DNA of 62,123 nt, the filler included, from Choristocarpus tenellus KU-1152 (lineage: Eukaryota; Protista; Phaeophyceae), in the NCBI GenBank assembly GCA_964200185.2. It is 10 parts of 10 records of this genome, joined end to end, with 100 filler letters (N's around TTAATTAATTAA, not from the genome) between each part and the next. Parts side by side here need not be neighbours in the genome. Positions count along the whole stretch, not along the records: positions 32,177 to 46,585 come from CAXNAD020001199.1; 9 more parts are not named here. The stretch is one strand, 5' to 3'. Positions 32,077 to 46,585 of this stretch are shown one piece after another. The notes under the pieces were generated by a model. The model was not told where the DNA came from, did no database searches, and worked only from the letters and a program-made list of their open reading frames with translations. The first letter of the stretch is position 1. Each line of letters begins with the position of its first letter. The position numbers were made by a program, and so were the translations under genes.

Positions 32077-32188
32077 NNNNNNNNNNNNNNNNNNNNNNNN
32101 NNNNNNNNNNNNNNNNNNNNTTAATTAATTAANNNNNNNNNNNNNNNNNNNNNNNNNNNNNNNNNNNNNNNNNNNNATCTCCCTCCAG

Positions 32189-35100
32189 TCCGAAATCAAG
32201 AAGTACGAGGAAGAGCAGGGGGTGGAGGAGCAACAGCGGGTGGCAATCATTCGAGACCTGCACGAGAGGGCAGACGCTCAGAAGGCAGCGGATGAGGAGT
32301 GGGCGAGGAGAGTCGAAGTTGCGCAAACTGTGGCGGACCGTCTAGCCAAGAAGGTATCATTCCTCTCTCTTGCTGCATGTGGACCGCTTGGACAACACAA
32401 GATTTTGTTTGTAGTATGCGAGGTCAGGTCACATGGCCCTTGGGTCCTCCAAATTGGAAAAAAAAAAAACTTTTTTTTTGCAGTAAGTGTGCCCTTTTTC
32501 CGAGGTCTTGGGTGAGACTCTTTTTGAAGATTTCCCAAAAGGGTCCAGTGGTGGTGTCTACCACTCAACCCAATCAATCTCTTCGAGCATGAACAACAAA
32601 GTTTGGTTGATCTTCTTACAATATCGGAGCTCATGAGTTGTTGTATTGGTTCCCTGTTCCGTTCCACAGGCTCAGTCGATCTTCTTCAAAATTCAGTGTG
32701 ATCAGTACCTGCAAGCAGTTGCCAAGGATGCAACAGGCGAGAAAGCTGCTGGTCTTCAGTCCATGGCCAGCACATTGACTGGACAGGGAATAACCGCATC
32801 TAACATCCTGGACTACATGAGCCTTATTGAGCAAAGATCAGTTCAGGTGAGGTCCACCAACCTTTTGGGAGGGGTACAGTACCAGCATTTAAGCTTGAGG
32901 CAGAATAAAGGAGAGGCATTCAGGTTTTGGCCGTTTTGTAAATTAAGCCTGTTTTTTCAAACTTTTGCAGTTCACCCATATTTCTACAGGTGAAGTTCTA
33001 GTTTTGAATTGAGAGCGTTGATTTCTCTATTGTTTTAGAATTTTTCGACAAAAATGCAGAAAATATTCTCTATGTATTTGTACATAAAAATACAATTTTG
33101 CACACGTTTGTCAGCATCCTTAAAGTGCTGCTCTCATTCACTTCGACTCAATGCCCCATTTTTTTTTGAAGCAGTTAGCACTCTATCACCACCAAGCCTC
33201 AGACATACTGTGTTGATCCCAAGGGTTAAAGCTACATGGAGAACCAACGCCTATACATAGAACATAATCTCTTTTCAATGCCTAGAATAGCTGCAGACTG
33301 TAGGCCCTGTGGGCCTGGGGTTCATTGGTGCACCTTTGCATACCGTCAACCACTTGCATCTCCAGCCCATGCCTTTTAAAACACAAATCAGTGCTTGATA
33401 TCTTGATGCGCAGTTTTTTGCGCATTGTTAAGGCGTTGCCTGATGAGTGAAAGTATCTTGGAGGGTACGAGTTTTGCCCTGTTTGTCAGTCTGGGGCTTG
33501 GCTTCCCACAGGTTTTCAATGACATTTTCCTATTCCAAAATGTTTCGGAATAGGTAAAATGTACACGTTTTGGAATAGGTTTCACGTATAAAACTATAAA
33601 ACGTTGTGTCTGGAACAAGAATATTGACACTTCCTTACAAATACAATAGCCAAAATTACATCCAATCACAACAGTGAAATTTTGGCCCCCAAACGGATGC
33701 AGCTCTACCCTCTAAGAGACTTGGACTCTGATGGAGCTTACACAAGCGACATTTGGTCAATGCTATACCGAGTTGAACATGCTGTCCATGCACTCTTTGA
33801 AGTCTTTCACACAAAGAGAGTTGTCCATCCAACTAAGCAACATGAACATTAAGGTACAGTGTTATCATTTGCTCAGGATAGACTGACTCTATTTCGCAAA
33901 TCATGCTAACACCAATAACAAACCCTCCACTAATTCACACCGATCCATCCATCCATCCATCAATCCAACTACATGGTTGTTACGTATTTCTGTCAGAGGA
34001 CATAGTAGCAAGAGAGAGGCTCTCATCATGCACGTATGTATTTCCTCATTACCTCAGTTAGTGCTCAAGTGGTTCCAAGTCTCCTTCCTTGATCCACCAC
34101 TAGATGCCAGACGATGCCATAGGTATATGTGTCTCTCTTGTAGTGTATGCTAGTATTGTGTGTCAAACAGGCAGTACATTCCATTGTTTAACAGGTGTCA
34201 AGAGCATCAAAATGCTGCTGAATAAACTGCTTGATAGTTTGATCCACAGTGCCTAGCTCTGCTACTTGTAATAGGTCTCCACTGGAATGCACCTCTCTTG
34301 CAGAAGTCACCTACTAGTGCTTTGAAGAGTAAACAATTCTGAGAATGCAAACAATTCTGAACTTTCGAGTTGAAGTATCTTAGGGTTAGGGTACGAGTTT
34401 TGCCCTGTTTGTCCGTTTGGGGCTTGGCTTCCCATGAACTTTTTAATAACATTTTCCTACTCTGAAATGTTTCAGAGTAGGTAAAAGTTCTGCGTCATGA
34501 AAAGTTGTGTCCTGAACAAGGATATTGAGGCTTACTAACAAACACGATAGCCAAAATTGACATCTAAATCGCAACATTGGATTTTGGCGTCTACATGGAA
34601 GCGGCTCTACCCTAACCCTAAGATAATTTGACTCTTCCACAATAGCTCCCTCCTGGACAAACACGTTTTGACCAGGCACCTGTGGCATGTTTAAGCCCAC
34701 AGTTACTTAGAACGCCCGTACAAGTTTGCTGGGCTTGCATCTGCAATAGTACATATTTATGATAGTCTCCTCTCATCATTGACTTGGAGATCCCTACGCA
34801 TCCTCACCTGTGCATCACGTACCTCAACTTTTTTTTTGCTCAGTCATGCTTTTTTGCTCAGTGTTCTGCATGGTATTTTCCAGTGCCTTTGTTGTTCGTA
34901 CATAAACAATTTGGGTGGGCTGCCATGCGAAATTGATAGGTTCAACAGGTTCTGCTGACAGAATCGACTTTCTTTTTTTTTTCGGAGCATGCCGCTTTGC
35001 TGGCTCTACTAGTTAGTGGGGGAAATGGACTAAGTGTAATATACACTGCTGTGATGGGTTGAGATTAATTGCTTTTGTCCATTTACGTTGTTATTATCTT

Positions 35101-35905
35101 TTTACTTCAGTTTGATCCCTTACTGCACTCACCATCCCAACATTTCTACAGCTTGCATTTCCTGTAAATTGTAGCTAGGCTATTTGGATCGAACAAGATT
35201 TCCTCTTGAATACATATCTTCATAGCATCATGAAAATCCTCAAGGTCCTGAGAAGGTTTGTCTCAAAATCAAGGGAACTGTCCTGTGTTGAGCATACTTA
35301 ACACAAATTTTACATAAATACACCCACTGCAATTCCCCAGCTTCGGAGCAATTCTCTCTTGGAAAAATCTTCCTATTTTTCTCTCATAGGTTTCATTGAA
35401 CTCTGTGCAGAAATTGGATGGCGTTTCAGCTACACCTAGACTAGAGCAGCACATGTACTTGGAAGGCACTACTATGAAGGTCCTCACCCAATTACAGCAT
35501 GCGGAGTAGCTCTTCGCTGATCTTCACTCAAGACTCACATAACTCTTCAAAAAAATGAGCTGATGTGGCCTTGTCAATGCCCCTGTTCTTGCTGCACCAA
35601 AACAGGTGATTGGCAACTACACCATGAAGCTTTTGTCTAACGATCCAGATGCCACTCCTATGTCTGGTCCTTGTCGGCCTCCAAGTTGGGAACTCCAAGA
35701 GCAAAGTCCGTACCTGGACCTGTCAGGTGAAGAGTCGGAAGGAGAGGAGATCACGGGGGACAGACCTCTGTCGCTGGAGGAGGCCCGAAAGGAGGTTGAG
35801 GAGAAGATTAGCAGAAAGGCAAGTAGACCTCAAATGCACGATCACTTTGAACTCACCTCTGTACCCATGCCAAAGATTGTGGAAGCCGAGGAGATTGAAC
35901 TGTGA
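32189..35905 (+). CDS. ODAD1: Outer dynein arm docking complex subunit DC2-like (ODA1/CCDC114/CCDC63 family), C-terminal three exons
   Basis: Exons 32189-32353, 32670-32846 and 35606-35905, all phase 0. QSIFFKIQCD, GQGITASNILDYMSLIEQR and an acidic stretch followed by RPLSLEEAR match the family pattern (GVTESNMMQYLGIIEQR, RPLTREEL). Paralog identity is uncertain. Confidence 0.8.
32897..33149 (+). mobile_element. MITE family D copy (diverged)
   Basis: Homologous along its length to 36264-36522 and to the reverse complement of 42456-42713; ends GAG...CTC. Confidence 0.75.
33445..33728 (+). mobile_element. MITE family A copy, TSD TGAT
   Basis: GAGTGAAAGTATCTT...GGACTC flanked by TGAT on both sides. 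Confidence 0.93.
34367..34634 (+). mobile_element. MITE family A copy with TTAGGG units in both TIRs, TSD TTC
   Basis: AGTATCTTAGGGTTAGGGTA...TACCCTAACCCTAAGATA. Confidence 0.93.
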
Positions 35906-36263
35906 ACAAAAATCTTGAAATGAGGTGTATAGGATGTTGTATCAGTGTCTACTAGATGTTGATGGTTGTATATCATCTTCTATAGGTCCTTGACGTGGCA
36001 CTCACATAAACGCTAAGTTGTTTCAATAGTAGAGCAATATGCATACAAAAACATCCACACGCGCGCGCGCGCACCCGCACACACACCCAAATAGCTCAAG
36101 GGGTTCACTACAGTAGAGAGTAAAGAGGGGATGAAAACGTTCACACAAACAATTAAAATATCAGATATTAACATCTAGTTGCAGGTTTTGTCCATTTGGT
36201 CATGCGGAAGGAAAAATAGCAAGCTCTTGAGTAAAATAGCCAAAGCGATACACCACTTGCCTA

Positions 36264-36522
36264 GAGCCAAAGTAAACGAGAGGTAGGCACCCACACTTTT
36301 GGCCGTTCCGCGTTTTAAGACACTTTTTTTTATCTTTTGCAATTCACCCTTACTTCTATGGTTGAAGTTGTGAGATTGAGCAGCATCAATTTCTATTTTA
36401 TATACTTTTGGACAGAATTCAGAAAAGTTCATTTTTCGAATATGCAAAAAAGTTCAATCTTGCACATAATTGCCAGCATCCTTAAAATGCAACCCTGGGT
36501 TCCTCTCGTTCACTTTGGGGTC
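36264..36522 (+). mobile_element. MITE family D copy
   Basis: TIRs GAGCCAAAGTAAACGAGAGG / CCTCTCGTTCACTTTGGGGTC. Confidence 0.8.
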
Positions 36523-37210
36523 CAAGCATGTTGACAAAGTTCAAGTTGACCAACTTCTCATAACTCCATTGGATGCCCTTGCCCCTCCATCAATGCTGAC
36601 ACACAGACACAGGCAGCACAACGTAAAGCAGCAATGCAGAAGAATCGCTCTTCACCAGTTAAATGGCAGGGGTTTGGGTAGAACTAGTTCAGTTGTGTGG
36701 TTCATTCACACCTTGATTGCGAATGCCCACAGTTTGCTTCATATCCATACACTGGGCCAGCTCAGCAAGGATAGCAATAATATACCAAAACTTCATGTGC
36801 AGAAGCGGCCTTGGAGTGCACACAACTGAAAATTGACATAGCAGACAAGTATCCCTCTCCCCCTACTGCGAGGTTTTCAAATCCTATGTCAAGTAATTCA
36901 CTTCCTATGTATCAGTACATGGCCCAACAAAAGGAAGTGGCAATGATCTCCATTTGCACACAATCTTTACCACTTCAACTATCCGCACTGCAGGATAATG
37001 TTGTCAGCATCATCACTTTTCCCTGGAGTACATCTGATGTGGCTGCAACTGTGTGATTATATTTTTTGCACAATGCTATCAAGCACTCTAGTACAATATA
37101 TTGAACATGCTCATCATCGCAAGACATTTGGGCATATATATTTGCCTTCACCCACTTTCATATCTTTCAAGTACTGAACAAGAAAGTCACTAATCAACAC
37201 TAACACCAAA

Positions 37211-37389
37211 GGCTCAAAGTATCTGGGGGTGTGTGGCGGCTGTCCATTCTGGGTCCATTTTTACATATCGCGTTTTTGGGGGTGATTTGGTTCCGTGCGT
37301 CGGATGCATAATATAAGTGCACTTTTCCTGGTCAGGGACCGAATGGACCCTCTGGTGTAGACCCCCCTCCCCTCCAGATACTTTGAGCC
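37211..37389 (+). mobile_element. MITE family B, complete copy, TSD AAA
   Basis: Perfect 16-bp TIR GGCTCAAAGTATCTGG / CCAGATACTTTGAGCC. Confidence 0.92.
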
Positions 37390-38067
37390 AAATTCAAAGT
37401 CCAAGGTGTTCTCCCAATTTGCATATTTGCTTGCTCACTCATCATTCCACCCACAAGGTGGAGAGTGTTCCTGCAACTGGACAGGCCCTTCAAAAAGAAG
37501 ATGTTTGAGGTTCTATCCTGTCCTGTAGAAGATCACTTGGCTACCCCTTTACCATAAAAGGACTATTTGTGTAGTAGTGTGCACTTTGCTATTTGTCGGA
37601 CTTGCAGTCACTAGCAATGCTGTGAATATGTGCTAGAGTAGATAGAGTACATATAATCAATAAAGATAAACTACTGGATCGACCGCCAACTTCTGATCTC
37701 TGTTTCATGGACTGGGAGAATTCAGGCGTGTAGAGCTCTACCTAAATACCCACAGGTGATAGCACAGCAGTGAGCGATACTGGTAGCGCTTTCTTAGTTT
37801 CTTACTATTTGGACTATTATAGCACTATTTTTCTGCGGAGTATGCCGATGCTTTCACTACTACTGATATAGTGAGACAAAAACGTTAAACTTGAAAAGTT
37901 GCAGCGAAGGGTGATGAAACGCCAGGAGGTTTCACCAAGTTCGATAATAAAGTACACGGAACATGTACCAGGAGAGCACAAAAAAATAAATAGGTGCTGA
38001 GTTGGAGGTAGAAGTGCGTCTGGCTCTTCCAGGTCAGGACCGGGGTAAGGCTTATGCTCAATCGACC

Positions 38068-41000
38068 ATGCCAGGGAGGCGGAGTTCGGCGGGACGAGCA
38101 CGCCGCCGCCAAAGTGCGAGCGAAATCGACTGGCGCTATGCTGTGAACACAACAGATGTCGCCGTCAATGGCTTCATAGACCCCGACAAAGCTATTAGGA
38201 AGCTCAAGCTCCATGGGTTGGGACTCTGGAGTATGCAGGCCTTGCTGGCGTTTATTATGACTGTGGTTGCTGTTGTTGCTGGTGAGAGGCCACAAATTCC
38301 TATTACATTTTTTGTAAGTTTATGGGGATGGGGTCGAAGCTGGACAAGTGTCCGACTGCACCACTCTGGTTAACAATATGCTCAGAGTCTCAGGAATACA
38401 TCGATGCAGAGTATGGCGTTTCAAGTAGCATTCCAGCATTTATGTCGTTGTAAACCCATACTCAATGACACGTTCGCCTGTTCCAATCTTTGTATATGCA
38501 GATATTCGGTATGGTGTCACGTACTGGTACACAAATACGGAAGCGGGGGGGAAGCTGCGGGACATGCAATATGCGTGGGCTTTCTTCAACACAATTTGTG
38601 CGATCTGTGGGGTATGGGTATACTTGTTATGGAAGGAGGTGATGGGTACAGACAGGAACCAGCAAGTTTTTCGACAAAAGGTAACCGTGTGCCAAATAAA
38701 TAACACGTATCCCCAGAAACCACTCAAACTAACTCTTGGACAATCCACATTCTGGCGAGACGTTGGAGTGGAAAGTCTGGTGAAGTTGTGATGCCTAGAC
38801 CCTATATATAACATTGTTAACATCACGACCTTCCTTTATCCAACGAACAGGTACACATATGGATTTCGTATTTCACTTGGGCGTTTGGGATCTGGACCTC
38901 TGCGGTTGTCTTGGTCAGCTTTGAAAACTACTCTTTCTCCGGTGAGACACCACATGGTTCCTTTTCTGAGCGATCAGGTTTACTACCTTGCATGTTTTCC
39001 ATTCAGTACGCTCTGACCAATAAGTATTTCTCCCTCTAGTGCTGAGGGCCTTAGTGTGAACAATTTTCTGTTCCATCCAGGACAGGCAGGCAAAAACATA
39101 ATTTCAGAGCAGGATTATCTTCTGAAAAAGTAGGCACAAGGATAAGATCCATGACGACAACAAGACCTCAATTTGATTCCCTTGCTACCTCCCACCCAGG
39201 CTTGCCTTGGATCAGTGGGCAAATCTCAGTTGTGTCTGCAGTGATGTTGTTACTCTCCGAATTAGATACATCAATATGATTGTCATGTCTCTCGCCCTCC
39301 TCCTCCCTTCCCATATACCACAGGCAACTACCCTACAGAACTCACATGTGCTTTCCTGGGAGCAGTCGCTTGCTGCTTTATTTCGGATTTATGGGGCTTG
39401 GGCAAGCTGTGCTCGCTAGGCACTTACACTGCCCGTCTGGAGGAGGAATGGAGAATTCATCCCCATGACCCCGACCAAGGCCCCCAGAATCTGATGTAAT
39501 ACTCTGGTATTTGTTGTGAAAGTGCGTTGTGTTTCTGAGCATTTGCAAATGTCGACCAGGGCATCATTACTGTATACATTTCTTGGTATTTGGACTGATG
39601 ATGTGTTATCCAGCCACTCCAAAATGTGATCTGTCCTGTTTTTTTACAATGCTTTACATGGAACTCTCACCGACCATAATTCTCATAACTGTCTTCTCCA
39701 TGCAGGGAAAATGCGCCAGAAAAAAATGTGAACAATAATGACTCCCAAGACAGACAACGTGATGAGAGGCGAAGAAGCCGGCATGAGAGGAGAGAGAGTA
39801 CAAGGGATTCAAAATCAGGTTGGTCATGCATTCCAAATGGGGAGATGGAGAAAAGTGTCAAGACTTCCAGTTTCCACTGGCACCAAAATTTACACCACCC
39901 TACTCTTTTGTTCCCCATGCAAACTCGATTTGTATGCTGCTCAGGAGTACTTTGTAGTGTACATTTCTCCATGCAATCTCACCTTCAAGAGGACAGGTTG
40001 CCATGACCATTGAGAGTGCAATGTTGCTGCAGTGCCTCCAGATTATTTGGTCATGGTTTAATCCCTCCGTAGGTAGGCTTTAGCAAGGAGCCACACGCCG
40101 TCTCATATAGGAACTCCAAATGTGTGATCGGGTAAACCTTCCTCTCACAGGGCCCTCAAGCGTATTGTTGGAGCAATCGAATTAAACTTCGCTTGAACCT
40201 GTCACAACCAACAGTGGGTCAAATTGCCTCAAATGATGTGCTTAATCCCTCTCACTAGCGCTATCAAACTAGACCTCTATAGAAATGGCATATGAACTAT
40301 GCACTCAATAGTAGTGGACTTGGAAGTTTTTGGCTTGGTAGTTTTAATGTAATAGTGGAGCTACTGTTTGGAGTTCGAGGTCTAGTGATGAACAACCAAC
40401 AACAACTAAGTACAATCACAAAATCCGCACTTTCACTTCCATCCCTGTTTTTTTTCCAATCCCTGCAACTGATCTCAGGAATTGAGGTTAGCATTAATGG
40501 GAAGGACCCAGAGGCTGGGTGAGTGTGGTTTCATAGATATGTGCTGCCCTCCCTGCTGTGCTATGTTTCTCTTCCGAACTTGAAGCCCAGTCAGCACCTT
40601 CTTGATCCCTGCACTTGGGAAATCTGCATACTCTGCAATGTACATAAATCATGTAATCCATCCCAGATATCAAGGGCATGTAGCATTGACTGCCTTGAAG
40701 TAAAATTAAGTTGAAAAATTGAAATAGTTTGGAGCTATTCCGCACAACTGTGTTGAACAGTGTATCCCAGCAGTATCTCATCAGTGTAGACTCAGGCATG
40801 CACATTCGATGGCATTCAGATCAGTGCGCTTCTCAGAGAGCTGTCCGAGACATGACAGGTCTCTTCAAGATATGCCATGGAAAAGGGGATAGAGGTGACT
40901 CTTCCAGTGGTGTTGGCTCATGGCAGGAGGACCTGGGAAGCATACACGCTGCAGCTTGCACCAAGTACATCATATGCTTTGAGTCATAGCAACTAGATGG

Positions 41001-43693
41001 GGGTATTGTTTGAGTGAAAGTATCTTAGAGGGTACGAGTTTTGCCCTGTTTGTCCGTTTAGGGCTTGACTTCCCACGGGTTTCTTAAATACATTTTCCTA
41101 CTCCGAAATGTTTCGGAATAGGTAAAATGTATACGTTATGAAAAGATGTATCCGGAGCAAGGATATTGACACTTCCTAACAAACACAATAGCCAGAACTA
41201 CATCAAAATCGCAACATTGGATTTCGACCCCCATTTGGACACGGTCGTACCCTCTAAGATACTTTGACTCTTGAGTAGAAGGGACCTCTGTGACTGCCTT
41301 CGATACATGTGCCCCTGGCACTATGGAAAAGCGATTTTGTGCTAGTGTGGATTGACTCTCGTCTCCTCTTCTATGGCCGCAGCCTCCTCATGGGGGTTGT
41401 CCGTATTTCGGGCATGGGAATGGGTTATCAGGCAAGGGAAAATAATATGAGCTTCTTGTACTAAAAATAAGCTAAATCGACCCCCATCTAGGATATTATG
41501 ACACCTCTCCTTGAGAGTCAAGATAGATCAAAACCATTGGAAGTTTGTAGGTGTCTGCAATGGATTAGGAGAGCACTAATCACAAGTATCCCCCCCTGGT
41601 GCCCTGAAACCTTGCATTATATATTTAAGGTTTGGACCCCTGCCACCAGCAGTCAACCCTGAAACAGATGCCTCATCAAATCGATCACTGGTATCAACCA
41701 ACTCCCAACAAGGTGAGCAACAACAGGCAATGAGAAGTGGGACCTGATCACACTCTACTGAACCCAAATTGCCCAACTCTTTCCATCAGGAATTCCTTAC
41801 TGGTTCACAAGGAAGCGGTGTTGTTATTAAATTAAATACTTGAGTATCTCATTGAAGTATCTCAATATGTTGCTGGCAGCCTCAAAACCTGGTGACTGCC
41901 TTACAACTGTGTGTGGAGCACCCAAAAAGAGATCACGTTTTGCCTTCCTTTCTCCTCCCATTCTCCAATGTTTGTACCTGTGGGCTTGTTGTGTTGAAAG
42001 TCGGAGAGGACGAGGTACTCTTGCCGCACGCCTTTGAACGTCTGTGGATCAATCTAGAGCAGAATGGAGGTTTCCAGACCCGTATTACCTCTCCAGTGTC
42101 ACAGACCAAGGTGGTGAGACACCTCAATGACAGGGGATTTCAGGCAAGTTGTCTCCTGAAGAAAAAAATGTTGTGTGCTAAGGTTTAGAGCTATTTGGAA
42201 GTGCTATTGCATTGATTCAAAGCAATCAATTGGAGTAGCTGCTGCTGCTTCCAATTTCTAGAGTGCATCAAGGCTCAAAGTATCTGAAGGAGGGGGGGTC
42301 TGTCCATTTGGGGCAATTTTTTTCAAGTCGCGATTTTCGTGTGATTTGGTTGCTTACGTCGGACGGATGATGTAAGTGCACTTTTCCTGATTTTGATCCT
42401 AATGGACACCCTGGTGTAGACCCCCCCCCCACCACCACCAGATACTCTGGGTCTTGAGTCAGCGTAAACAAGAGGTACCCAGAGTTTGTTTTTAGTATAC
42501 TGCCAAGTATGTACAAAATTCTGTTTTTGATACAAATGCATATAGGACTTTTTTCCGAATTATATCGAAATTTTCAGACAACAGAAAAATCAACCCTCTC
42601 ATGTCAAACTTAGCACTACATCCATAGAAATATGGGCGGATTGCAAACGTTTGAAAAACCTGCTTATATTGCAAAACGGCCAAAAGCTGGGTACCTCTCA
42701 TTTACTTCGAATCATTGGCCCATAAAGGTGTGATATCCCCCATCCTCATGCCATGCTAAACCAATGAGGTAAAAAGCTCTGTAATATTTTCACGGGATGC
42801 TGAGGTAGTGGGTAAGAGAATCTGGCATCATCAACTGTGAGATCTCAGCTATGGGATGGAGCCCTTACCTTTGGATATTATTAACCGTAATGCTTCTTTG
42901 ATTACCGGTCAAACAGAAATTAACTGAAGGTGAAAATCTTGTCTAAAGAGGCAGATCGTCGTCCTTAACACACTTAATCCCTTTTGTTAGGTGAATATCT
43001 AGTCTGGAGCCCATACACATGTACGTGCAATCATTTTGGATACTTCTATACATACCTGTTTTTCTACATCATCTGAATGGACGTGTGAAATGTATGGGCA
43101 ATTTCCTTTATCTGAGCACACGTTCCTTTTTTATCCCCCTGCCTGAACCAAAACTGAAAGAAAACCACCCGCAAAATGGGTGTCGAGGTGGGGTATCTTA
43201 CCACACTTCATCAAGCCCCGAATGGACAACATGCCCTAAACACACACACCCCTAAGATACTATGGGTTTGGCTGCACTGGGGGTTTCAATGTTGAACAAG
43301 TCAAACTGCTTTGAAGAAAAGTTTCAGTACACTCCATACACAGTTTAATAACTGTTGCAGATAACAATTGACTCCAGCAGTCTCCTCTCCTCATTTCTAT
43401 GCATAGGTCCACTGAGACACTACCAACTTCACTTATCATATTGTTTCATTTTTTTCGCTTTTTGCGGTGAACTTCAGGTGGTAGCCGCTGGTACTATTGG
43501 CACACTGATGAGAGTACTGTTCTGCGCCAAGGAGGCCACCGTCAATGGCACAGGGGAATGGTTCCTTGCAGAATTTCTGGTAGACGAGGCAGCATTGACA
43601 TTGGGTGCCACATTCAAGAGCAAAAAGCCTGCACTTGTGCCCATCTTTGTCCAGAGCTTCATGCTGCATCAATTGTACACCATAGCATCATGA
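38068..43693 (+). CDS. Predicted 416-aa protein: N-terminal 4-TM domain, charged linker and C-terminal beta-adaptin appendage (platform) subdomain
   Basis: Exons 38068-38281, 38502-38680, 38851-38941, 39324-39495, 39706-39818, 40479-40518, 41630-41712, 42001-42143 and 43478-43693 total 1251 nt, and all eight junctions are phase compatible; the last intron is GC-AG. The C-terminus LLPHAFERLW...LNDRGFQVVAAG...FLAEF...LGATFKS fits the B2-adapt-app_C pattern (judged by eye). Confidence 0.72.
41012..41270 (+). mobile_element. MITE family A, near-consensus copy (intronic)
   Basis: GAGTGAAAGTATCTTAGAGGGTACGA / TCGTACCCTCTAAGATACTTTGACTC, plus the central hairpin. Confidence 0.95.
42272..42453 (+). 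mobile_element. MITE family B copy (intronic)
   Basis: GGCTCAAAGTATCTG...CAGATACTCTGGGTC. Confidence 0.9.
42456..42713 (-). mobile_element. MITE family D copy, 2 nt downstream of the family B copy
   Basis: Inverted ends GTAAACAAGAGGTACCCAG / CTGGGTACCTCTCATTTAC. Confidence 0.8.
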
Positions 43694-46324
43694 ACAAGCG
43701 TGAGTGCATGCTCTGACACGACCAACTCTGCCTTTTTCCCTGCTGCACTCTATTTGTGGACTTGGCGCCATTGTATCCTTTACTGTAGTGCCTAACTAGC
43801 AACATACATAAGTTGGTGCAGCTTGTTGAATTGATTAGGAGGAACAACTACCTTCCTAAGAATGATACACCTGCAAGTACTGCTGTATGATATGATGGTT
43901 TTCATATTATGTACCAGGCATAAGGTATTCCAATTGGACGGACAAGCTTAAGGGATACAAAAGAGTGCTCCCACACCTCCTCATTCTTTGTGTCACCTTG
44001 CAACTCCTAACCCTCATTGTCATTCTAGTTCATGATGCTGCTCCTCATCAGCATTGTCAACGCTTCTATTACCTACGATTCCCCCTTGTCTCTCTCCTCA
44101 ACACCACCCCTTGCCATCCCATTCTTGACTTTCTGAAACTCCCTTCAATGCTCCTTAGGTGACCAATTTCTTCTCAATAGATATACAATATCTTTCAGCT
44201 ATTTTAGCTTGACACAATTTTCACTCCATAGTTGGAAGTATCATTACCTCACACACAGCTAAAAAATAGGAGGAGTGGTGATATACTCAACCGGTTTTAG
44301 ACCTTGCCAAATGGGGTGGGAATGATCAGCAATACTTGACAGACACCTCAGTTGTACTCTGTTCATTTGGAGATCCCGACTGTAAGCTCAAGGGATGTTT
44401 GACTCACCTCTCATCGTTGAAGGATGGTTGCATCTCGGTTCCAGAACAGAAACGTGCCAATTAATACTGCAAAAAATTAGTATTCCAACACCGCTGTGCA
44501 CACCCATGCATTGCAATACCATTTCTATTGATACTCGTATCTCACCCATACAGAGAACAGAAATGGAAGAGTAGACATCTTCTTAAGAGTAGACCTGTAG
44601 TGAAATGTGGTCGAGAGCGCTAAGGCTAACGTAGAGATAGTGCCTTTCCCAAATATATTATTCTTGCTTGCACAAGTTGCAACAACCTAGGAGGCGTGTA
44701 TGCGACCATTCTAGATGGGGTAAATCACATCTTCTGTCTTATTTTCTGAATGAGTTGCTTAACATAGGGGTTAACATGGTTCATTAGCGAGATATCAAAG
44801 GCTCTTTAGGTTTAGGACTGGAGGATTTTTTCAGTTGTAGCTGTTCAGGACATGTTGATATCACATCTCTGTCTCCAATATTCTGAACAGTATCCTACAC
44901 AACTCAGCATTTGTTGGGCCCTGCTTATCAAGTCCGGGGGCGGGGGGAGGAAGGGGGNNNNNNNNNNTATGTGAAATAGTAGCGTAAAAATGTAGGAGGG
45001 GGGGGGGCCGGGCTTAAAAGGGCGGGGGGGGGGGGGGGGAGGGGGGGGGGGGGGTGCAGACCATTTGCCAAAAAAAGGCTAGTCTGTCTAGCATTGTGCA
45101 GCGTTAGTAAGGCTTGTGCAGTCTAGCCTATTTCAAACTATTGTTGTTCTTAGTAGGACATACTTGCCACTAGAGGACCATTGTGACACCATTCAAAACA
45201 GCAAAGGACCCTGGATGAAGGCCACCCGGCAGTTGTGAGTCTGCCAAAGTTGAACTACTCTGTAGTATTACCATACATACACATCTTAAATATGCACCTC
45301 CTCCCATGCCTGTGGGTAGCAGTACAATGCGGTTTACCCTTAATTCAATAAAAAAACACCATGAGTCACATCAAGGTGCGTATTTTACCTTGCATGTACA
45401 TGCTCCTATCAAATACACCCAATCAGAGAGAAGTGCGAGGGTCCAAGGACCTTGACTGCTCTTGCTCGAAGCATATCAGAATATCTGTTTGGCTGCTTTG
45501 CCTTGACTGTGATACAGTAATGGGAGACTACCTAGGCTCTACTCAATATCAAATTTGACTGCCTGTTTTGACTCTTCAATCTACCTAATAACTACCACTA
45601 CCTCAACCTCTTCATGAAAAGTTACCTTTGAGTTTCTAAGGCCCTTGATCCAACTCGATACTAACAACAACCCCAGCCACATCATTCAAAAAGTTGCAGT
45701 TTCAACAACATTACTTTTTTCTTTCAAAATTTCAATTACAAGAATACACTTCCCTCCCCTAACCCTTGAATATGCAACTATGTGTCATCTAATTACAACC
45801 CATACAACCAGCTCGATAACAAGAACAGGACATGTGTGCAGAAACCAGGGGCTCTGCACCAAGCCCAATGAAGGGGGGTTCCTCAGGTAAACTTGCCAGT
45901 GTTTAATTGAACCACCCATAAAGTCCAACAGTTACCCCTGAGCCCACCTCAATCATTTGAACAGACTAAAAACTCACAAAATGGAATACACGGTTATCTA
46001 CAGCAAAGGTCAAAGCCCCTTCATGACCTCAACAAGACCAGGCAGTCAGTGGAAGCTGAGGTAAAAAACCCGTCACAGGCAATCCATCTCCCACCGCACA
46101 ACCCAACACATGAACTGCATGTCGATAAAAAAAGGTCTTCCAACAAAGTACAAACACCACACCAAGTATACTGGTCAGGGGGACCAGTCAAGTCCTGTTG
46201 AAATGAACATTTCCAGGCAATGCGATAGGTGCACCTTTCACCAATTCCCCCTCAAGCCACAAAGCTCACAAGCCTTGGTTCAAAAAAACAAAACTATAAC
46301 AAGGTACAAGGGGAACCCTTCCTC

Positions 46325-46585
46325 TCACTGCCAGACCCGAACCCAATCAACCACCAGGGCAGACGCCTCCCCAGCCTCCTCCCAAGAAGGTAGCCACCTA
46401 TCCCGTTTATCCCAAAATATCTGACGCTTGGAACGGGGGTCAGCACCCCCATCCCCATTCTCACTCTCTGACCACGGAGACCCTGACCAGTAGCCAAAGT
46501 TTCCTCCCACGTCACCCCCGACGGCAACATTCATCACCAGGTAGAATTTTTTATCGAAAGGTGCGCCACGTGATGTGCCCGGGAT
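46325..46585 (-). CDS. Glycoside hydrolase family 16 (beta-1,3-glucanase/laminarinase-like), C-terminal fragment
   Basis: APFDKKFYLVMNVAVGG, FWDKRDRWLPSW and LVVDWVRVWQ* are the typical C-terminal motifs of this GH16 subgroup. The catalytic ExDxxE is outside the contig. Confidence 0.9.
   Translation of the reverse strand: MPGTSRGAPFDKKFYLVMNVAVGGDVGGNFGYWSGSPWSESENGDGGADPRSKRQIFWDKRDRWLPSWEEAGEASALVVDWVRVWQ

Follow-up and report, generated by a model that had tools for sequence, protein, structure and literature searches.

A predicted four-helix membrane protein with a C-terminal beta-adaptin platform in the brown alga Choristocarpus tenellus and related ochrophytes

Positions 32177-46585 of the window, the whole 62,123-nucleotide (nt) stretch of DNA analysed here and the one to which all coordinates refer, come from contig CAXNAD020001199.1 of the brown alga Choristocarpus tenellus (assembly GCA_964200185.2). 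The gene under study lies at 38068..43693 (+) and encodes a single polypeptide in which four conserved hydrophobic helices are followed by a disordered linker and, at the C-terminus, by a beta-adaptin platform. Its nine exons total 1251 nt, giving 416 amino acids (aa) plus a stop codon with no internal stops. The predicted transmembrane (TM) segments and the ear (the adaptin platform) are distributed as follows.

Exon 1, 38068..38281 (+): start codon, basic N-terminal tail and TM1 (aa 53-71, 38224-38280); 56-64% identity with Ascophyllum and Undaria, identical to the public model.
Exon 2, 38502..38680 (+): conserved loop 1 and TM2 (aa 96-114, 38573-38629); 69-80% identity.
Exon 3, 38851..38941 (+): TM3 (aa 134-152, 38857-38913); 77% identity.
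Exon 4, 39324..39495 (+): TM4 (aa 170-188, 39347-39403) and a conserved helical extension.
Exon 5, 39706..39818 (+): charged disordered linker; present in the public model, with 35% identity and equal phases in a second algal contig (L001).
Exon 6, 40479..40518 (+): linker, phase 1 to 2; splice signals, and an exon of the same phase in Ascophyllum and L001.
Exon 7, 41630..41712 (+): linker, phase 2 to 1; splice signals, and an exon of the same phase in Ascophyllum and L001.
Exon 8, 42001..42143 (+): first half of the platform (F309, E310, W313), with an AAG acceptor and a GC donor; 70% identity to L001.
Exon 9, 43478..43693 (+): second half of the platform (V347, A348, G350, L359, E377) and stop codon; 62-75% identity to brown algal orthologs.

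The introns have phases 1,0,1,2,1,2,1,0 in this order; seven are GT-AG and the last is GC-AG (CAG/GCAAGT). Exons 6 and 7 are presumably linker exons, a placement that draws on their splice signals and kept phase, their sequence not being conserved. A sequence-only reading had proposed this nine-exon gene with a single 416-aa frame and had taken an apparent stop at 39497-39499 to overlap the phase-2 GT donor of exon 4. Both proposals hold. The Ascophyllum nodosum locus can be read as nine exons sharing all eight intron phases with Choristocarpus, and the junction 39495/39706 is used both by the public Choristocarpus protein CAM9269542.1 and, in the same phase, by Ascophyllum, which rules out the stop at 39497 as the true end of the coding sequence. 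L001 carries exons 5 to 9 in the Choristocarpus phases, with the same AAG acceptor before exon 8 and a GT at the site of the Choristocarpus exon 8 GC donor.

Comparison with Ascophyllum and L001 gives ratios of nonsynonymous to synonymous change (pN/pS, with synonymous sites near saturation) of 0.25-0.35 for the ear exons 8-9 (0.25-0.35 for exon 8, 0.25-0.32 for exon 9), against 0.17-0.28 for TM exons 3-4; judged from these sequences, purifying selection acts on the ear exons. The linker, of about 110 aa, is close in length to that of Undaria (108 aa). CAM9269542.1 is 257 aa long and corresponds to residues 1-257 of the 416-aa protein, ending after G257 without the ear, and its gene range stops at window position 41930. 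The shared phases in Ascophyllum and L001, the low pN/pS of exons 8-9 and the Undaria-like linker length all favour the longer model, and hence the view that the public gene model is truncated. No RNA run was found to contain the locus. In two sequencing runs it is found on unspliced, apparently genomic contigs in which the exons are intact, with a single Ala-to-Val difference in TM4 at 39369. Other public models of the family have irregularities of their own: that of Ascophyllum (CAM9253473.1, L006:43521-45000) appears to omit a 26-nt exon at 44520-44545 and to read intron into exon 8, and that of Laminaria, with an insertion of 20 aa where the last two exons meet, looks mis-spliced.

Searches were made exon by exon, and database orthologs served for full-length analyses. 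The last intron splits the match to the Pfam family B2-adapt-app_C (PF09066), with positions 2-49 of the model falling in exon 8 and 50-109 in exon 9; exon 9 alone scores 23.5 bits, above the gathering cut-off of 22.6, and orthologs reach 26-50 bits over positions of about 2-109. The beta-adaptin platform predicted for the C-terminus is thus matched by its profile from end to end, and the AlphaFold2 model of ortholog P0007 shows the appendage fold, a five-stranded sheet with flanking helices. This model has four long helices, a disordered region at aa 223-294 (predicted local distance difference test score, pLDDT, <50) and a platform of pLDDT ~80-90. The closest structure to its ear is the human AP-4 beta4 appendage (2MJ7; Foldseek E 1.4e-4, VIA Z 14.8), with a root-mean-square deviation of 1.9 A over 109 residues and 18% identity. 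Next come beta2 (Z 13.1-13.7; 13.4 for 1E42), alpha (11.4-11.9) and gamma-COP (10.6-10.8). In these model comparisons beta4 exceeds beta2 by 1.1-1.7 Z units, a small margin that expresses a structural preference, not a phylogeny; trees of the ear and of the TM part are mostly unresolved, and sequence searches of the PDB for a beta4 alignment were uninformative.

The protein resembles AP-4 beta4 (AP4B1) in having a platform-only ear, placed C-terminally after a linker, but the soluble beta4 subunit has a trunk formed by an alpha-solenoid, whereas the N-terminal part of the Choristocarpus protein consists of four TM helices. With beta1 and beta2 of AP-1 and AP-2 (1E42, 2IV8, 3H1Z) it shares the platform fold and the residues F837, W841, A877 and E902 (beta2 numbering), but it has no sandwich subdomain, clathrin box or trunk. 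The residues before the platform are low-confidence coil in the P0007 model and alignments to 1E42 begin at residue 828, in line with the absence of the sandwich. The trunk domain Adaptin_N has no match in the exons or in full-length orthologs, and this lack of a trunk, with a four-helix TM bundle as N-terminal half, rules out identity as an AP subunit. That a membrane anchor took the place of the trunk, as the sequence-only reading inferred, would be a conjectural history.

The membrane anchor and disordered linker foreseen in the sequence-only reading are borne out by hydropathy peaks at aa 53-71, 96-114, 134-152 and 170-188, reproduced in the family average, and by the helices and disorder of the ortholog model. 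The Choristocarpus TM domain itself is predicted to fold as a four-helix bundle (pLDDT 80.5, predicted template modelling score 0.76). Mean column identity in the TM part is highest in loop 1, TM3 and the helix after TM4 (0.70-0.73, loop 1 leading with 0.73). Among natural structures the bundle best matches sarcospan (Z 14.6), FceRI beta (13.6), uroplakin (12.7) and LCI1 (10.8); a designed maquette ranks first, and designed bundles score as high as natural ones. No Pfam match at E<=1 to the MS4A/CD20, MARVEL, sarcospan, SCAMP or tetraspanin families was found in nine members. A feature search of the ESM Atlas gave nothing at 0.9, and a CD20 row at 0.82 is a lead only; the shape search was uninformative. 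The likeness to sarcospan, MS4A/FceRI beta, synaptogyrin/MARVEL and uroplakin lies in the predicted four-helix bundle, whose two ends share one side of the membrane (Z 11-14.6), but none of these tetraspan proteins matches the Choristocarpus TM domain in sequence. Tetraspanins, which have a large second extracellular loop with a CCG motif and disulfides, differ further, as loop 3 is here ~13-17 aa long without CCG and the loops are too short. The modelled TM part is therefore best described as a generic tetraspan-like bundle without identified family. We know of no tetraspan protein that carries an adaptin ear. Lysine and arginine are in excess in the N-terminal tail and loop 2 and show no excess in loop 3, a distribution that fits, and moderately supports, a predicted N-in/C-in topology with both ends cytosolic and loop 1 luminal.

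The same layout was found elsewhere. A profile of exon 9 searched against 1.84 billion representatives retrieved at least 13 proteins at E<=0.001; none of the matches listed is recognisable as a canonical AP beta subunit. The full-length matches, which hold counterparts of the four TM exons and of both ear exons in order, are Chrysoparadoxa australica CAM9172481.1, Tribonema minus KAG5187950.1, an MMETSP transcript cluster and environmental sequences; searching with the TM region brought in proteins of Ascophyllum nodosum, Undaria pinnatifida and Laminaria digitata, each of which has PF09066. Four TM helices, linker (75-130 aa across the family) and ear thus occur together in these five named species, and named members among the matches listed all belong to the PX clade of ochrophytes. 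They also occur in a single uninterrupted open reading frame (ORF) in L003, a 24-kb gene-dense eukaryotic contig, and in L002 and L009, which are short and probably transcript contigs, so that the architecture does not depend on splice prediction. These ORFs, together with the conserved phases, rule out a splice artefact or the fusion of two adjacent genes. The predicted architecture is that of a conserved ochrophyte family. In UniRef the annotation of the Tribonema protein goes no further than "beta-adaptin appendage domain-containing protein". A word search with full alignment gave at least two hits, and metagenome locus scans were blank or uninformative. No description of the family was found in the literature searched, which left out most subscription journals.

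In Tribonema minus and in a metagenome eukaryote the gene stands head-to-head with SBDS (L007:4-4931, L008:3430-6546), a microsynteny conserved between these two that the Choristocarpus contig does not show. The L008 gene has its TM part and its ear called as separate ORFs, a division probably due to a linker intron. A further sequence, P0011 (L004:181-2289), is a 702-aa single ORF with ~7-8 hydrophobic segments, an acidic Ser-rich linker and PF09066 at E 1.5e-9. Its TM region is faintly like TM1-loop 1 of the four-helix family (hhalign probability 27%), and it is possibly a second membrane-tethered ear family.

The functional potential of the ear was assessed from its ligand groove in ten ears, with residues mapped through HMMER alignments to 1E42. 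The top groove of beta2 binds DxxFxxFxxxR helices via R834/R879, F837/L838/I876, W841/Y888 and E849/E902, and the mutation Y888V abolishes arrestin binding (PMC1540706). F837, W841 and A877 are invariant in the ten ears, E902 is kept in nine and I876 is a valine in nine, while the E849 position is variable. L838 is replaced by E almost throughout, and we take a glutamate at this position to be a beta4-like feature. The hydrophobic core of the groove is probably retained, and the motif recognised is probably not the DxxFxxFxxxR of beta2. We privilege, as somewhat better than an even bet, the hypothesis that this conserved ochrophyte integral membrane protein serves vesicle traffic, either as a permanent docking site or as a cargo receptor. 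The linker would take the role of the adaptin hinge and let the tethered ear reach out from the membrane, where a cytosolic coat-accessory or sorting protein would dock through a short motif into the hydrophobic top groove of the platform. The role of the conserved loop 1 and TM3 would be to contact a client, in the membrane or in the lumen, or else to determine where the protein is located. Soluble AP complexes are recruited by GTPase and lipid triggers; recruitment by the tethered ear would instead be fixed by where the protein resides. SCAMPs and Sys1 are integral four-TM proteins that recruit cytosolic trafficking factors by presenting short motifs or loops. They offer a functional analogy only, as the Choristocarpus protein would present a folded motif-binding domain; the NPF repeats of SCAMPs are absent from the 416-aa protein and from ten linkers.

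Several observations weigh against this hypothesis. R834 is replaced by P and R879 by G almost throughout the ten ears. When aligned by the ungapped profile, Y888 corresponds to L in most members and remains Y in the two that diverge most, whereas the pairwise register gives F; it is probably replaced by L, so the groove may serve another use. Sequence searches of Pfam and the PDB found no match for the TM domain, and loop 1 does not carry the net acidic charge that would strengthen the proposed topology. With R834, R879 and probably Y888 lost, the ligand likely differs from those of beta2, and a partnership with tepsin or epsins cannot be assumed since several ligand-contact residues differ. 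For comparison, beta4 binds tepsin, whose motif is LFxG[M/L]x[L/V] (PMC13335578), and is assembled into the AP-4 heterotetramer. The recruitment of accessory proteins suggested by the sequence-only reading stays plausible, with the reservation that several beta2 ligand contacts are replaced; its other suggestion, coat nucleation, is weakly supported, the clathrin box and the sandwich (Y815) site being absent. The protein probably works like an adaptin ear, though it is neither an AP subunit nor a member of a known tetraspan family. A narrower version of the docking hypothesis, which we put forward only tentatively, is an ochrophyte-specific adaptor whose luminal loop would capture clients and whose ear would recruit a lineage-specific coat or accessory network without an AP heterotetramer. 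Given P0011, there may be at least one other family of membrane-tethered ears besides such an adaptor.

Somewhat doubtful, yet the strongest of the alternatives, is that the four-helix bundle is the working part of the protein, as a small channel, a scaffold or an auxiliary subunit of another membrane protein, with the ear repurposed for oligomerisation, self-sorting or a non-coat partner. Natural structural neighbours of the bundle are indeed tetraspan scaffolds and auxiliary subunits, the TM half is conserved equally to or above the ear, and several beta2 ligand contacts are lost. However, the Z values of the bundle fall within the range of generic four-helix bundles, with a designed maquette in first place, the invariant residues of the ear include residues of the known ligand groove, and the ear is kept in every complete relative found. 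That the protein nucleates clathrin coats alone is improbable. The idea has a precedent in the engineered beta2 hinge and appendage, which makes coated pits when tethered to the membrane (PMC9337851) and which the TM-linker-ear spacing resembles, both placing an adaptin ear on a membrane through a flexible linker. But that construct is artificial, and to form vesicles it depends on its clathrin box and on the Y815 site of the sandwich, whereas no contribution of the platform site could be detected (PMC8488560); these are the sites missing here, as all ten linkers surveyed are devoid of clathrin box, W box, DPF/DPW and NPF motifs and the sandwich subdomain is absent. The Choristocarpus protein is probably not a clathrin nucleator. 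Equally hard to credit is that the family is real but that the main Choristocarpus product is the 257-aa ear-less form, with exons 8-9 skipped or decaying: the end of CAM9269542.1 and its gene range, high-copy repeats in the linker introns and an ear identity to other browns (61-69%) slightly under that between Undaria and Ascophyllum (72-75%) agree with it, but exons 8-9 are intact with pN/pS like that of the TM exons, eight of eight intron phases match Ascophyllum, the sole AG acceptor that yields Gly-stop is a GAG lying 8 nt downstream of a CAG, and splicing near the ear exons also looks wrong in the public models of Ascophyllum and Laminaria.

The surroundings of the gene are rich in repeats with terminal inverted repeats. 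An element of ~260 bp resembling a miniature inverted-repeat transposable element, with 26-nt terminal inverted repeats, is present at 41011-41272, 33440-33730 and 34367-34636 and has very high copy depth in both runs. A second family (42270-42455, 37209-37389) shares with it the core AAAGTATCT, and a third is found at 42455-42714, 32906-33130 and 36296-36515; both these families have copies upstream of the gene as well as inside its last intron. At 32177-35905 (+) the contig holds the tail of an upstream coiled-coil gene, with exons near 32177-32353, 32697-32846 and probably 35607-35905, of which the public model covers only the first two. Its product has no Pfam match and presumably resembles a subunit of the outer dynein arm docking complex.

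To our knowledge, all adaptin ears are carried by soluble, transiently recruited coat subunits. A natural and conserved membrane-integral ear would be a different way to wire the coat accessory network to one membrane. The docking hypothesis can be tested directly, with the ear as a small soluble bait and with orthologs available from several brown algae. A further outcome is that the public gene model looks truncated. The family is a candidate for an innovation in trafficking among brown and yellow-green algae, groups in which cell biology has received little attention.

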